IMG/VR virus record: IMGVR_UViG_3300046092_000062
Coordinates: 1 to 64,000 of that record
Length of the DNA: 64,000 nt
Strand: one strand, 5' to 3'
In this document: positions 2,598 through 63,924 of the stretch, piece by piece
How positions within the stretch are numbered: the stretch's first letter is position 1
How the letters are laid out: every line of letters begins with the position of its first letter
Position numbers and translations under genes: made by a program
Notes under the pieces: generated by a model
Database searches by the model: none
Seen by the model: only the letters and a program-made list of their open reading frames with translations
What the model was told of the DNA's origin: nothing

Positions 2598-3773
2598 ATG
2601 ACAACCGCATTACTAGAGAGCCGTTGGGGCGAAACAAAAGACGCCCTACTAGAAGGCTTACAAGGTTCGAAGAGAACTACAATGGGCGTGATCTTAGAGA
2701 ACACCCGTAAACAATTGAGCGAATCTGCAACAGCAGGTGGCACATCTGCAGGTAGCGTGGCTACACTTAACCGTGTAATCTTGCCAGTTATCCGTCGCGT
2801 TATGCCTACAGTTATCGCTAACGAAATCGTTGGTGTTCAGCCAATGACAGGCCCAGTTGCTCAGATTCATACACTACGTGTACGTTATGCTGATGGTACA
2901 ACAGGTCCAGACAGCAGCCAAAACACTGGCGCTGGTGACGAAGCATTGAGCCCATTCAAGATTGCTACTCAGTACTCAGGTACAGGTACAACTGGTAAGG
3001 CTGCAAGCACAGCTACTTTGGAAGGCGTACCTGGTAACCGTATCAACGTACAAATCTTGAAGCAAGTTGTTGAAGCTAAGACACGTAAATTGTCTGCACG
3101 TTGGACATTTGAAGCTGCTCAAGACGCACAAGCTATGCACGGTTTGGACGTTGAAGCAGAAGTTATGGCTGCTTTGGCACAAGAAATCACAGTTGAAATC
3201 GACCAAGAGATCCTAGGTTCTCTACGTTCGTTGGCAGCTACTGAATTCACATTCAACCAAGCTACTGTATCTGGTACAGCTACATTCGTTGGTGACGAGC
3301 ACGCCGCATTGGCAGTATTGATCAACCGCGCAAGCAACTTGATCGCTCAACGCACACGTCGTGGTGCTGGTAACTGGGCAGTTGTGTCTAGTGCTGCTTT
3401 GACAGTATTGCAATCTGCTACAACTAGCGCATTTGCACGTACTACAGAAGGTACATTCGAAGCTCCTACAAACACTAAGTTTGTTGGTACATTGAACGGT
3501 GCTATGAAGATTTATGTTGACGGCTATGCCCAAGACGGACAATCTGTATTGGTTGGTTACAAAGGTTCGAGCGAAGCTGATGCAGCAGCGTTCTATTGCC
3601 CATACGTACCATTGATGAGCTCTGGTGTTGTTCTAGACCCAAGCACATTCGAACCAGTAGTTGGCTTCATGACCCGTTACGGTTATGTTGAGTTGACAAA
3701 CACAGCTAGCTCTTTGGGCAACGCTGGTGACTACTTGGCAGAAATCGCTGTAAGCAACTTGAGCTTCCAGTAA
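2598..3773 (+). CDS. gp23: Major capsid protein (gp23-like)
   Basis: LPVIRRVMP..IANEIVGVQPMTGP, KTRKLSARWTFEAAQD, EIDQEIL, FYCPYVPL, GFMTRYG motifs. Confidence 0.97.
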   Translation: MTTALLESRWGETKDALLEGLQGSKRTTMGVILENTRKQLSESATAGGTSAGSVATLNRVILPVIRRVMPTVIANEIVGVQPMTGPVAQIHTLRVRYADGTTGPDSSQNTGAGDEALSPFKIATQYSGTGTTGKAASTATLEGVPGNRINVQILKQVVEAKTRKLSARWTFEAAQDAQAMHGLDVEAEVMAALAQEITVEIDQEILGSLRSLAATEFTFNQATVSGTATFVGDEHAALAVLINRASNLIAQRTRRGAGNWAVVSSAALTVLQSATTSAFARTTEGTFEAPTNTKFVGTLNGAMKIYVDGYAQDGQSVLVGYKGSSEADAAAFYCPYVPLMSSGVVLDPSTFEPVVGFMTRYGYVELTNTASSLGNAGDYLAEIAVSNLSFQ

Positions 3774-22877: not shown

Positions 22878-24500
22878 ATGCACCATAACGTAAAATCAAT
22901 TACCATCGTGGGCGGTGGATCAAGTGGATGGATGACAGCAGCAGCAATAGCTAGGCTTCTACCCAACATTAAACTAACTCTAGTTGAGAGTCCCAATATC
23001 CCTACTATTGGTGTAGGCGAAAGTACTATTGGACATATTAATCAATACCTAGCATTAATTGGTATTAAAGACGAAGACTGGATGGCAGCATGTAATGCAA
23101 CATACAAGACCAGTATCAAGTTCATTGACTTTAGAGAAAACCCAAAAGAAGAACCACACAAGTTTCATTACCCATTTGGTATCCTGGACTTTACAGATAA
23201 GCCACGCGGCCCAATGGAATGGTTTTTAGCAGCAGCCGATCGCGGCAATCTTGATCCCAGTAACTTTGCAGAGTTTTATCACGACAGTATTTTAATGACT
23301 GACAAGAATAAAATTACACGCAACGAGGATTACAAAATTCGTGGGTTTAACTTTAAAGAAGATACAGCGTACCACATGGATGCTACCTTATTCGGCGCAT
23401 GGCTCAGAGATAACCTGTGCTTACCAAGTGGTATGACTCACATTCTAGATACCGTCACTGACGTTGTGCAACGTGAAGATGGATCGATTGAAAAAGTTGG
23501 AACAGAGAACAGCGGATACCTTGAAGCAGACTTGTTTGTTGATTGTACTGGATTCAAGAGCTTGCTATTAGACCAAACTCTCAATGAGCCATTTACTAGC
23601 TTCCACGACACACTGTTAAATGATAGAGCAGTAGCTACAGTAATTCCCTACATTGACAAAGAAGCAGAAATGGAAAACTACACAAGCTGCACTGCCATTG
23701 AGTGCGGCTGGGTATGGAACATTCCATTATGGAATCGCATTGGCACAGGCTATGTTTATAGCAGCAAACATGCCACTGAAGAAGAAGCAGAAGCGCAATT
23801 CCGCAAACACCTAAAGAGCAATCGCATGATGTTTCCGGATGCAGAACGTGCAGACACATGTGAGCTAAGACATATTAAGATCAAGCACGGCGTCCATGAA
23901 CGTGCATGGGTCAAAAACGTAGTAGGTATCGGACTTGCTAACGGTTTCATTGAGCCACTGGAAAGTACAGGACTGATGCTAACGCACGAAGGGATTGTTA
24001 AATTATGCAATACTCTGTTAATGCGTAACGGCGTTGTTAGCAACTACGATGTAGATTTGTTTAACTATGGATTCCAAGAACAGATTCTAGGATTCAAAGA
24101 CTTTATCAGTCAGCACTATGCACTAAGCTGCCGCAACGATACTCCATACTGGAAAGAAGTTACAGGCGATTTAACGTATTCACGAGCAATGGGCGGGACT
24201 ATTAACTTGTCTGGGCTAGCACACGATGTACGGTCAGCGTCCGATTTGGGTATGCGTATGCACCGCACCCGAACATTTGATAACAACATGGGCGGGATTT
24301 TGTATATTGCAGCAGGACAGGGATACAATCCAGTTGAGCCAAACTACATAAGATACGAGGACACAAGACGCCACGAGTCGCCTGAACTGCGTGCCACTAT
24401 CTACGATAAATGGCTAGAGCACAAAGAAGAAGTAATGGCACACATCGAGACTTTGCCGACGCACTACCAATTCTTATACGATAACTTCTATAGCAAGTAA
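22878..24500 (+). CDS. Flavin-dependent (tryptophan) halogenase family protein
   Basis: GGGSSGWM, IGVGES, FVDCTGF, GWVWNIPL (WxWxIP), GFIEPLESTG. Confidence 0.92.
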   Translation: MHHNVKSITIVGGGSSGWMTAAAIARLLPNIKLTLVESPNIPTIGVGESTIGHINQYLALIGIKDEDWMAACNATYKTSIKFIDFRENPKEEPHKFHYPFGILDFTDKPRGPMEWFLAAADRGNLDPSNFAEFYHDSILMTDKNKITRNEDYKIRGFNFKEDTAYHMDATLFGAWLRDNLCLPSGMTHILDTVTDVVQREDGSIEKVGTENSGYLEADLFVDCTGFKSLLLDQTLNEPFTSFHDTLLNDRAVATVIPYIDKEAEMENYTSCTAIECGWVWNIPLWNRIGTGYVYSSKHATEEEAEAQFRKHLKSNRMMFPDAERADTCELRHIKIKHGVHERAWVKNVVGIGLANGFIEPLESTGLMLTHEGIVKLCNTLLMRNGVVSNYDVDLFNYGFQEQILGFKDFISQHYALSCRNDTPYWKEVTGDLTYSRAMGGTINLSGLAHDVRSASDLGMRMHRTRTFDNNMGGILYIAAGQGYNPVEPNYIRYEDTRRHESPELRATIYDKWLEHKEEVMAHIETLPTHYQFLYDNFYSK

Positions 24501-62753: not shown

Positions 62754-63094
62754 TGCACAAAATCTACGTTGATGTTCCGTACGAGTACAACTATGTGTAC
62801 CGAGTTGATCATGATGAGTCCACTGGTCCAGAAGTGCTAGCAAGGGACTTTGGGGTAAAGTTTGCGTTTATTTGCAACGCTGCTCAGAGATTCAGCAACC
62901 CCGAAGGACTTGGAGCAGTGGGCAATACAGGTGATGCTCACGTGGTATGGCTTGAGTCGGAGAAAGACGAATTGTTCTTTCTAATCAAGTCCGGATTTAC
63001 CAAGTTAAATAAAGATGTAGTTGAACTATTCTTGAAAGCAAGATTGGAAGCTATGCGATTAAAAGAGAGGAATGATTATGAAACGTGTAATTGA
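62753..63094 (+). CDS. Hypothetical protein
   Basis: 113 aa ORF, TAATG overlap. Confidence 0.55.
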   Translation: MHKIYVDVPYEYNYVYRVDHDESTGPEVLARDFGVKFAFICNAAQRFSNPEGLGAVGNTGDAHVVWLESEKDELFFLIKSGFTKLNKDVVELFLKARLEAMRLKERNDYETCN

Positions 63095-63749
63095 GGTCCG
63101 TGCCGCAGAAGGTGGCGAAGACAGTAAACTATTTGTAAAAGACTTGGCACAAGCCTACATTAAATTTGCACACAGCAAAGGCTGAACTAGCCGCCTGATA
63201 AATGAGTATCTTGGCGAAGTTCATATCTTAGTCGAGGGTGCTGATTTATCTGGCTTATACAACGAGCCAGGTGGACACCGAATACAGCGTGTACCACCAA
63301 CAGAGCGAAAAGGACGAGTACATACCAGTACTGTTACTGTCGCTGTTGTTGATCCAAGTGTGCCGACCACTACCATAAAAGAATCTGATTTGCGGATTGA
63401 ATGGTACAGCGGAACAGGCGCAGGAGGACAACACCGTAACAAGCACCAAAACAGTGCCCGCGTTACGCACATACCTAGTGGCACAGTAGTAACAGCACAG
63501 TGTCGCAGTAGGGAAAATAGTTTGGCAGAAGCTATGCAAACTATTCGAGAAAGAGTTGACAAGATAACAAAAGACTGTTATAATAACAACTTAGCAAGCA
63601 ACAGAAAGCAACAAGTTGGTTCAGGGATGCGAGGAGACAAAATTCGCACATACCGCTTTCAGGACGATACAGTTAAAGATCACGTAAGTGACAAGACTGC
63701 AAGCGTTAAGAAAGTGTTAGCCGGCAACTTTGACTTACTTTGGAATTAA
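63078..63749 (+). CDS. prfA: RF1-type peptide chain release factor lacking domain 1, interrupted by in-frame TGA at codon 36 (63183-63185)
   Basis: EVRAAEGG..., HRIQRVPPTE.KGRVHTS (PxT), GAGGQH.NK (GGQ), IRTYRF; one frame from ATG 63078 with one TGA. Confidence 0.85.
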
Positions 63750-63763
63750 AAAGGAAAATTGAC

Positions 63764-63787
63764 ATGAAACGTTCAGGTAAACGATAG
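63764..63787 (+). CDS. Mini-ORF MKRSGKR ending in TAG followed by a hairpin
   Basis: AAGGAA SD 7 nt upstream; stem GTGTCATCC/GGATGGCAC starts at the G of TAG. Confidence 0.4.
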   Translation: MKRSGKR

Positions 63788-63849
63788 TGTCATCCTAGAC
63801 CCCCGTATGGTCCTGGATGGCACGTAAAAGAAAAATATTTACGATCCAT

Positions 63850-63924
63850 CCACAGCAAACTTTGCTGGCGAAGTACCCGGCTCTTACCCGGACTAACAGA
63901 GTTCGATTCTCTGGCTGTGGACCA
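63850..63924 (+). tRNA. trnK: tRNA-Lys(CTT)
   Basis: Loop CTCTTAC; CCA. Confidence 0.85.

Follow-up and report, generated by a model that had tools for sequence, protein, structure and literature searches.

A predicted translated leader with two mutually exclusive RNA folds precedes the tRNA-Lys genes of uncultured freshwater jumbo phages

The genomic context of the leader

The window analysed here is the first 64,000 nucleotides of a 320,767-bp phage genome (IMG/VR record IMGVR_UViG_3300046092_000062) that carries 48 tRNA genes and a permuted tmRNA. A tail sheath and a T4-type terminase mark it as a jumbo myovirus, and its nearest isolates are PA5oct-like phages, at 53% terminase identity. 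A stop-to-stop analysis showed no recoding of TAG or TGA in the genome, so the standard code (table 11) was used throughout.

Near the end of the window, a release factor (RF) gene ends at 63749 and is followed by tRNA-LysCUU (63850-63924) and tRNA-LysUUU (63928-64002, running just past the window end). A third tRNA-LysUUU lies at genome position 64135. The promoter, the leader and the first two tRNA-Lys genes are on the plus strand. The first of these tRNAs is atypical, with C1-G72 and an A8/U14 swap; it was called by ARAGORN and its cloverleaf was checked by eye, but the Rfam tRNA model does not report it at E<=10. The RF gene contains in its 3′ part a perfect sigma-70-type promoter (TTGACA-17-TATAAT, with TG) at 63556-63584, the likely source in this genome of the transcript that carries the leader. 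This promoter scores 11 or 12 of 12, at about the same position (191-197 nt before the RF stop), in all 30 RF genes examined (the window plus L001-L029, where L numbers denote the loci we retrieved), whatever lies downstream.

Between the RF gene and the tRNAs, a Shine-Dalgarno (SD) sequence AAGGAA (63751-63756) is separated by 7 nt from an ATG (63764-63766) that opens a mini-ORF, ATG AAA CGT TCA GGT AAA CGA, encoding MKRSGKR and ending in TAG (63785-63787; ORF plus stop, 63764-63787). Lys codons are found at 63767-63769 and at 63779-63781, two codons before the stop. The G of the TAG is the first base of a hairpin, here termed A, at 63787-63823, made of a 5′ arm (segment 1, 63787-63801) and a 3′ arm (segment 2, 63809-63823). 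It has a 9-bp base (GTGTCATCC/GGATGGCAC, with one G-T), a 2x2 internal loop, a 4-bp top (GACC/GGTC) and a 7-nt loop. The preliminary description had reported this SD-led mini-ORF with its abutting stem, including three of the four top pairs, and everything it recorded at this place is confirmed.

A second predicted fold competes with hairpin A

Folding of the 111-nt region does not give hairpin A as the minimum free energy (MFE) structure, and reveals a second fold that the preliminary description had not recorded. Instead of A, GGATGG (63815-63820), which is part of the 3′ arm of A, pairs with CCATCC (63846-63851) to form an alternative helix B (63815-63851). CCATCC corresponds to the last four bases of the pre-tRNA leader and tRNA bases +1 and +2 (positions -4 to +2), hence helix B contains the RNase P cleavage site and cannot form together with A. 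A small hairpin C (63823-63843; CGTAAA/TTTACG) with an A-rich loop is compatible with both folds and forms the inner part of helix B. Its stem is only partly supported on the alignment (62-65% of cells paired), and its loop is largely conserved, varying between AAAGACAA, AAAGAAAA and AAATCAA.

A third pairing, which we consider tentative, involves the SD (AGGA) and TGACAT, overlapping the first two bases of the ATG (segment 0, 63752-63765). These can pair with the 5′ arm GTGTCATCCT (in the window, AGGA with TCCT and TGACAT with GTGTCA), occluding the ribosome-binding site.

The leader is conserved in relatives

A protein search with the RF gene gave 80 IMG/VR loci at 68-97% identity. The mini-ORF, TAG and stem were found next to the RF gene in only a few of them, namely L001/L002, L004 and L003 (on both sides of the gene in the latter), while in several others (L024/27, L048/52 and L066) they lie about 2.5 kb upstream of it. 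Every time, the element sits directly before tRNA-LysCUU.

To test conservation without circularity, a first scan was anchored only on the 3′ half of the element (loop GTAT, TGGCAC, AAAGACAA). It gave at least 88 distinct true copies, the rest being P-loop coding sequences. A second scan, anchored on the ORF and the 5′ arm, added at least 64 distinct copies with other 3′ halves, for a total of at least 150 sequence variants. Many copies are related, so that counts of sequences are not counts of independent events. Conservation of the start, of the stop identity and of the stem had been proposed as the test of the preliminary description, and all three are conserved in 85 of the 88 variants retrieved without the ORF as bait: an in-frame ATG...TAG ends exactly on the G that opens the stem. 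Of the remaining copies, two have the TAG mutated to ATG and stop at another TAG four codons further on, and one has TAA followed by G.

No copy was found outside these viral sequences except one. Blastn of GenBank phages with the window region and with a typical leader found nothing beyond tRNA matches. A pattern search of 185,579 prokaryote species genomes gave 78 hits, of which only one is a true copy; it sits on a 3.9-kb contig binned with a Polynucleobacter MAG and is probably phage DNA. No Rfam 15 family overlaps 63751-63849 at E<=10, and none was found at E<=5 on L201, a locus numbered as genome coordinate minus 61000. Full-text literature searches found no description of such a leader, which is not proof of novelty.

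The mini-ORF has the features of a translated ORF

Over all 146 canonical copies, the ORF has 6-10 sense codons in 144, and every length difference in the alignment is a whole number of codons. The peptides are M-K-R-(S/T)-(G/A)-K-(R/L/Q/M/P) and shorter or longer versions. The ATG is invariant. The codon before the last is always Lys (AAA in 140 and AAG in 6), and codon 2 is AAA or AAG in 140 of 146, most of the other six being ORFs that were started by our script at an earlier in-frame ATG. Within each length class the third codon position is the most variable, with an entropy of 0.79-1.02 against 0.23-0.70 at positions 1 and 2; for example, Ser appears as TCA, TCT, TCC or TCG and Arg as CGT, CGA, CGC or AGA. 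An SD-like tetramer lies 4-8 nt before the ATG in 133/146. In addition, a sigma-70 promoter matching at least 10 of 12 positions (45 of them perfect) ends 20-31 nt before the ATG in 61/142, against 2/142 control windows, and the others follow the 3′ end of an upstream tRNA. In the window, the RF gene with its embedded promoter occupies that place.

Four freshwater metatranscriptome runs hold contigs over the leader and across the leader/tRNA junction, for example 2765-2851, 2785-2941 and 2805-3004 on L201, with a summed depth higher than on the flanks. As these are contigs that may include DNA and show neither ends nor strand, they are only weak support for transcription as one unit. The contig edge at the ATG most likely marks where conservation begins, rather than a 5′ end.

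Conservation and energetics of the two predicted folds

RNAalifold run on 85 homologues predicts hairpin A on its own, with seven covarying pairs. On these sequences the base helix is 99.1% paired and the top helix 90.7%, seven pairs are changed on both sides, and no shuffle of 500 and no slid register was as good. The variable base of the 3′ arm (GG[A/T/G]TGG) changes together with both of its possible partners, the 5′ arm GTGTCA[T/A/C] and segment 3, seen as CCATCC, CAACCC or CACC. The outer helix of B is 88% paired, even though MAFFT puts one subtype a base out of register. Matched arm/segment-3 duplexes average -10.1 kcal/mol, against -7.7 for mismatched partners and -6.4 for shuffled ones.

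For the hairpin region alone, A is the MFE in 80/85 sequences, while blocking the first 10 nt, the part that a ribosome sitting on the stop codon would hold, gives B in 85/85. Similarly, positions -1/+1 of the tRNA are unpaired in 124/131 free folds and paired in 129/131 blocked folds. Forced-A and forced-B energies differ by -1.3 +/- 2.9 kcal/mol, and by 3 or less in 85/128, so the two folds are near-isoenergetic. When the SD and ATG are included, the MFE in 72/128 is the third arrangement, in which the SD/AUG region pairs with the 5′ arm and B forms. This pairing is more complementary than shuffled sequence (-7.7 against -4.5), but a column-wise analysis gave no covariation, because its partner never varies. 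We also considered that the shifted stop in L105/L165 tracks a shifted B register, but this does not generalise to the LysUUU-first group and is not relied upon.

In these loci the leader precedes tRNA-Lys

The first downstream tRNA is Lys in all 131 copies where ARAGORN calls one (124 CUU and 7 UUU). In the first set, the uncalled cases were contig ends or loops that read CTCTTAA by eye. LysCUU is followed within 15 nt by LysUUU in 108 variants. Among 3734 tRNAs in the same loci, SD-led mini-ORFs occur before 114/132 distinct LysCUU contexts, and before 7% or less of every other species apart from LysUUU. The hairpin is present in 129/132 LysCUU contexts, the exceptions being a second LysCUU paralogue (genome position 74468) and one operon with the tRNA order swapped. 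The loci were partly fetched with the leader as bait, so these fractions describe this clade and not phages at large. No analogous leader was found before other tRNAs in these loci, apart from one lineage with MKRGYSM before tRNA-Tyr.

Relation to the RF gene and to readthrough

The preliminary description had inferred a possible second sensor, reporting RF1 activity or Lys/Arg tRNA status to the downstream tRNA-Lys genes and pairing with a UGA gate in the RF gene, and had noted that 3′ stems can stimulate readthrough. This interpretation is only partly supported. The link to the tRNA-Lys genes holds in every case where a tRNA could be called, and with the Lys codons of the ORF it makes a report of Lys-tRNA status to these genes a live and attractive reading. 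Coupling to the RF gene is not supported. The phage factor is RF1-type (PDB RF1 scores 2e-33 against 3e-18 for RF2, and the PPT motif aligns to the RF1 PVT), and its in-frame TGA, at the position of a conserved Trp, is kept in 80/80 homologues whatever lies downstream. However, only the window, L001/L002, L003 and L004 have the RF gene next to the leader, and three of the four leader-bearing genomes that are at least 99% complete lack the RF.

Stem-stimulated readthrough is not supported either. The frame past the TAG is open for 49 codons in this genome, but only because it runs through the tRNA gene, a feature particular to this lineage. Among the 146 variants the frame closes after 3 codons in 61 and anywhere up to more than 75 codons in the rest, so no extension product is conserved. 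Finally, the role of UAG as a dedicated RF1 sensor cannot be separated from geometry. TAG ends only 21 of 291 long ORFs (7%) in this genome, where it is the rarest stop, yet it is nearly universal in the leader, which could reflect RF1 dependence; but TAG is also the only stop codon that can end on the invariant G-C closing pair of the stem.

An attenuator-like model for tRNA-Lys maturation

We favour, with about even confidence, the view that this 110-nt stretch is the 5′ leader of a phage pre-tRNA transcript (LysCUU, LysUUU and further RNAs) that works like a classical leader-peptide attenuator with four segments (SD/AUG, 5′ arm, 3′ arm and pre-tRNA -6 to +3), its output being access to the 5′ processing site of the tRNA rather than a terminator. 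What the analysis itself establishes is the conserved 6-10-codon ORF with its SD, ATG, Lys codons and stop overlapping hairpin A, together with the conservation, mutual exclusion and near-equal predicted energies of A and of helix B, the latter containing pre-tRNA positions about -4 to +2/+3. Ribosome occupancy, RNase P sensitivity and any regulation are inferred, the 5′ maturation output only from the position of helix B.

A ribosome protects about 12-15 nt 3′ of the A-site codon and unwinds mRNA about 11 nt from the P site. In this model, a ribosome that has reached the UAG would hold the first 6-10 nt of segment 1 in its mRNA channel; the conserved 6-7-bp base of A must then be open, freeing GGATGG to pair with segment 3, and the RNase P site would be buried (OFF). 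With the AAA before the last codon in the A site, the ribosome would only touch the base of A, and with the AAA of codon 2 in the A site it would cover the SD/AUG, keeping this region from pairing with the 5′ arm. In both cases hairpin A would form, the pre-tRNA leader would stay single-stranded and tRNA-Lys would be matured (ON). With no ribosome at all, the SD/AUG region may pair with segment 1, which again favours B. The net effect would be that phage tRNA-Lys is released when Lys-tRNA is limiting for translation, through codon demand or through host cleavage of tRNA-Lys. The TAG would be explained mainly by geometry, with RF1 setting how long the ribosome dwells there. The general statement, that a translated leader and a two-state RNA govern the 5′ end of tRNA-Lys, seems to us more likely than not, whereas the specific response to Lys-decoding capacity is at best an even proposition.

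Several points weigh against this model. Helix B takes only 2-3 bp from a 7-bp acceptor stem, so its effect could be small or short-lived. Only two Lys codons are present, fewer than in the classical leaders, and the invariant AAA may be held by an intra-ORF helix (CGTT/AACG in the window) or by termination context rather than by decoding. Moreover, AAA is read by tRNA-LysUUU, yet the first gene controlled would be LysCUU.

Alternative explanations

A termination sensor, in which the dwell time at the RF1-specific UAG, set by host or phage RF1 activity, decides between A and B and so tunes tRNA-LysCUU, a near-cognate misreader of UAG, is unlikely but would fit the prevalence of TAG, the RF1-type phage factor and the folding results, since a ribosome at the stop is exactly what flips A to B. 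Against it stand the geometric constraint on TAG, the variant using TAA followed by G and the genomes lacking the RF gene, and in E. coli Lys at -2 and U after the stop reportedly favour fast, not tunable, termination. We regard as equally unlikely a processing or stability element, in which hairpins A and C and helix B guide nucleases or protect the precursor 5′ end, while translation merely keeps the leader unfolded or shields it from Rho or RNase E. The element does always sit at the 5′ side of a tRNA array, sometimes directly after the 3′ end of another tRNA, and the A-rich loop of C is largely conserved, but this reading does not explain the exact overlap of stop and stem, the invariant Lys codon, the near-equal energies of two exclusive folds, or why only tRNA-Lys among about 40 tRNA species has it.

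The remaining readings are less likely still. In a readthrough or suppression device, the UAG would be read through, stimulated by the 3′ stem or by the phage's own tRNACUA, and the passage of the ribosome or the extended peptide would be the signal. A stem does abut the stop, and suppression cannot be excluded, as the genome encodes a well-formed tRNA with anticodon CUA and its own promoter (187515-187589), as do two relatives for the tRNA. However, besides the lack of a conserved extension, the upper-stem covariation changes the would-be residues freely, and BLAST with this tRNACUA gave only T-arm-length matches or none in 3 of 5 complete relatives. The hairpin could also be the binding site of a phage or host protein, for example a synthetase, a nuclease or a repressor, with the ORF being secondary, since five base pairs of the GUGUCA/UGGCAC stem base never vary in 85 sequences while the upper stem covaries, and the CCGUAU-type loop is largely conserved. 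But the double duty of these bases, the 3′ arm having to fit helix B and the 5′ arm carrying the stop, can alone freeze them, no candidate protein is consistently adjacent, and the ORF shows coding-type variation. A promoter overlapping the ORF, TTGACA (63759)-18-GATAGT (63788), which would drive the tRNA-Lys genes and make the ATG and TAG by-products, scores 10 of 12 but is already contradicted: its -35 reads ATGTCA in the 97%-identical L001/L002 and is mostly xTGACA elsewhere, consensus promoters lie upstream of the ATG in relatives, and promoter-like hits in the region are no more frequent than in shuffles. Hairpin A was also rejected as a terminator, because it has no U-run and most relatives have no gene upstream.

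Comparison with known systems

The ribosome-mediated transcription attenuators (trpL, hisL, pheL and thrL leaders) share with this element a short SD-led leader ORF with codons for the regulated amino acid, a stop placed so that a terminating ribosome masks the first segment, mutually exclusive hairpins (A and B sharing GGATGG), and, in the proposed model, the same logic, with a stalled ribosome giving ON and a free-running or absent one OFF. Here, however, no terminator-like site lies at 63787-63851, A being followed by GTAAAAGAAAAA and B by the tRNA body, without a U-run; the controlled genes would be tRNAs and not biosynthetic enzymes, the alternative helix buries a tRNA processing site, there are only 2-3 regulatory codons, and the element is phage-borne. 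In translational attenuation leaders (ermC, ermB, cat, cmlA), ribosome position on a mini-ORF likewise remodels a downstream hairpin with a post-transcriptional output, but these expose the ribosome-binding site of a protein gene and need a drug-stalled ribosome. Here the tRNA starts 26 nt after hairpin A, no ORF or ribosome-binding site follows, and no consistent basic-X-basic (Arg/Lys-X-Arg/Lys) spacing was seen in the peptides read.

Recoding signals (UAG/UGA with a 3′ stem or pseudoknot, bacterial SECIS, PYLIS) also have a stop codon immediately followed by a stable conserved stem, as found here in 85/88, but no downstream frame is conserved, there is no Sec/Pyl machinery context, and the stem starts at the stop itself and has a conserved competing partner downstream. 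Lambda bar-type minigenes are phage-borne, very short SD-led ORFs whose translation interacts with tRNA pools; they are 2-3 codons long and act by peptidyl-tRNA drop-off of the last tRNA, whereas here the last codon is variable (Arg, Leu, Gln, Met, Pro) and the conserved features are the Lys codon before it and the two RNA folds. Finally, T-box leaders couple tRNA status to the expression of translation-related genes through alternative helices, but they bind tRNA directly, are not translated, end in a terminator or a sequestor, and regulate synthetases or transporters. No Rfam T-box match was found here, and by eye UGGC would pair with only three bases of the ACCA end and does not match discriminator A.

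Implications

If the model is right, and this remains tentative, this would be the first attenuator-type, ribosome-read sensor that controls a tRNA gene: phages would measure the capacity of the cell to decode lysine codons with a 6-10-codon leader ORF, and release their own tRNA-Lys from an RNase-P-resistant precursor fold only when ribosomes stall, one possible trigger being host anticodon nucleases that destroy tRNA-Lys. The element is short, modular and abundant in nature, which makes it directly testable and potentially usable as a synthetic sensor of decoding capacity. tRNA genes are usually treated as controlled at the promoter and by generic processing, and a translated leader with a two-state RNA switch in front of a tRNA would add a new output class, access to a processing site, to leader-peptide attenuation. 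It would also show that phages regulate their tRNA supply in response to translation itself, which would help explain why jumbo phages carry large tRNA arrays and could connect to tRNA-targeting host defences.

The release factor gene and its surroundings

The phage release factor (RF) gene at positions 63078-63749 of the window encodes a protein of the RF1 type, as its PPT aligns to the PVT motif of RF1. The protein starts about where RF domain 2 begins, so domain 1 seems to be missing. The gene carries an in-frame TGA (63183-85) at the position of a conserved Trp, and this TGA is kept in 80/80 homologues. In addition, a sigma-70 consensus promoter (TTGACA-17-TATAAT, 11-12 of 12) lies at positions 63556-63584, embedded in the coding sequence of the RF gene (VD..YNN). 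It sits at about the same place in all 30 RF genes examined, whatever gene follows. Elsewhere in the window, a phage-encoded protein of the tryptophan-halogenase family (Pfam PF04820, E 2.5e-109) was found at 22878-24500.

The RBS and first three codons of the RF gene (window 63061-63086, AGAGGAATGATTATGAAACGT) closely resemble those of the leader (AGAGGTAATGACATGAAACGT), as seen by comparison with the leader starts in the relatives' loci L139, L143, and others. Nearly all of the 45 RF homologues that we read begin with MKR, while three begin with MKK or TKK. This may be a trace of recombination between the two. In another relative, L003, the RF gene is flanked by two copies of the leader (L003 2675-2860 and 3583-3745). 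The upstream copy is followed by only the 5′ half of tRNALys(CUU), as if the RF gene had been inserted into the tRNALys operon.

Other tRNAs and structured RNAs of the genome

A well-formed tRNA with anticodon CUA, of the amber-suppressor type, was detected at genome positions 187515-187589 (locus L359) and has its own -10 element. There is also a permuted tmRNA (tag ANDEQFLMVA), at 180876-181270 (locus L360). The observation also covers L361 and L362, and in L362, a distant relative, the two are adjacent. The genome shows no sign of TAG recoding.

Structured RNAs of about 70-125 nt sit between the tRNAs, at genome positions 64003-64128, 64213-64285, and 64413-64510 (3001-3130, 3210-3290, and 3410-3510 of locus L201, which covers this part of the genome). 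Each is closed by a long terminal stem bracketed by CATAT...ATATGG. Two of them contain a GGTTCGATTCC T-arm-like motif, and none matches Rfam. Similar bracketed elements occur at the same place in the relatives L003, L027, L048, and L066.

The leader-linked tRNALys genes and distribution of the leader

The tRNALys(CUU) behind the leader (window 63850-63924) is atypical, with C1-G72, A8 with U14 instead of U8-A14, and, in this genome, a C27-A43 mismatch. It is not reported by the Rfam tRNA model, although it is called by ARAGORN. All the leader-linked Lys(CUU) genes that we read start with CC. Among the leader variants (for example, L282, L289, L302, L309, and L316), the Lys codon before the last codon of the leader ORF is AAA where Lys(CUU) follows (124 cases), but AAG in 5 of the 7 cases where Lys(UUU) comes first, and these may represent only a few lineages.

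In the prokaryote genome collection, the only copy of the leader is found on a short contig of 3.9 kb (L263, CAYYOB010000099.1) binned with a Polynucleobacter MAG. The 43.8% G+C of the phage would suit this freshwater genus as host, but mis-binning is just as likely. Finally, one lineage (L081 at 7261, L161, L169, and L197) has an MKR-type mini-ORF containing a Tyr codon (MKRGYSM/MKRGYSR, stop TAA) about 50 nt before tRNATyr, followed by a small hairpin. Although seen in this one lineage only, it may be an analogous leader for another amino acid.
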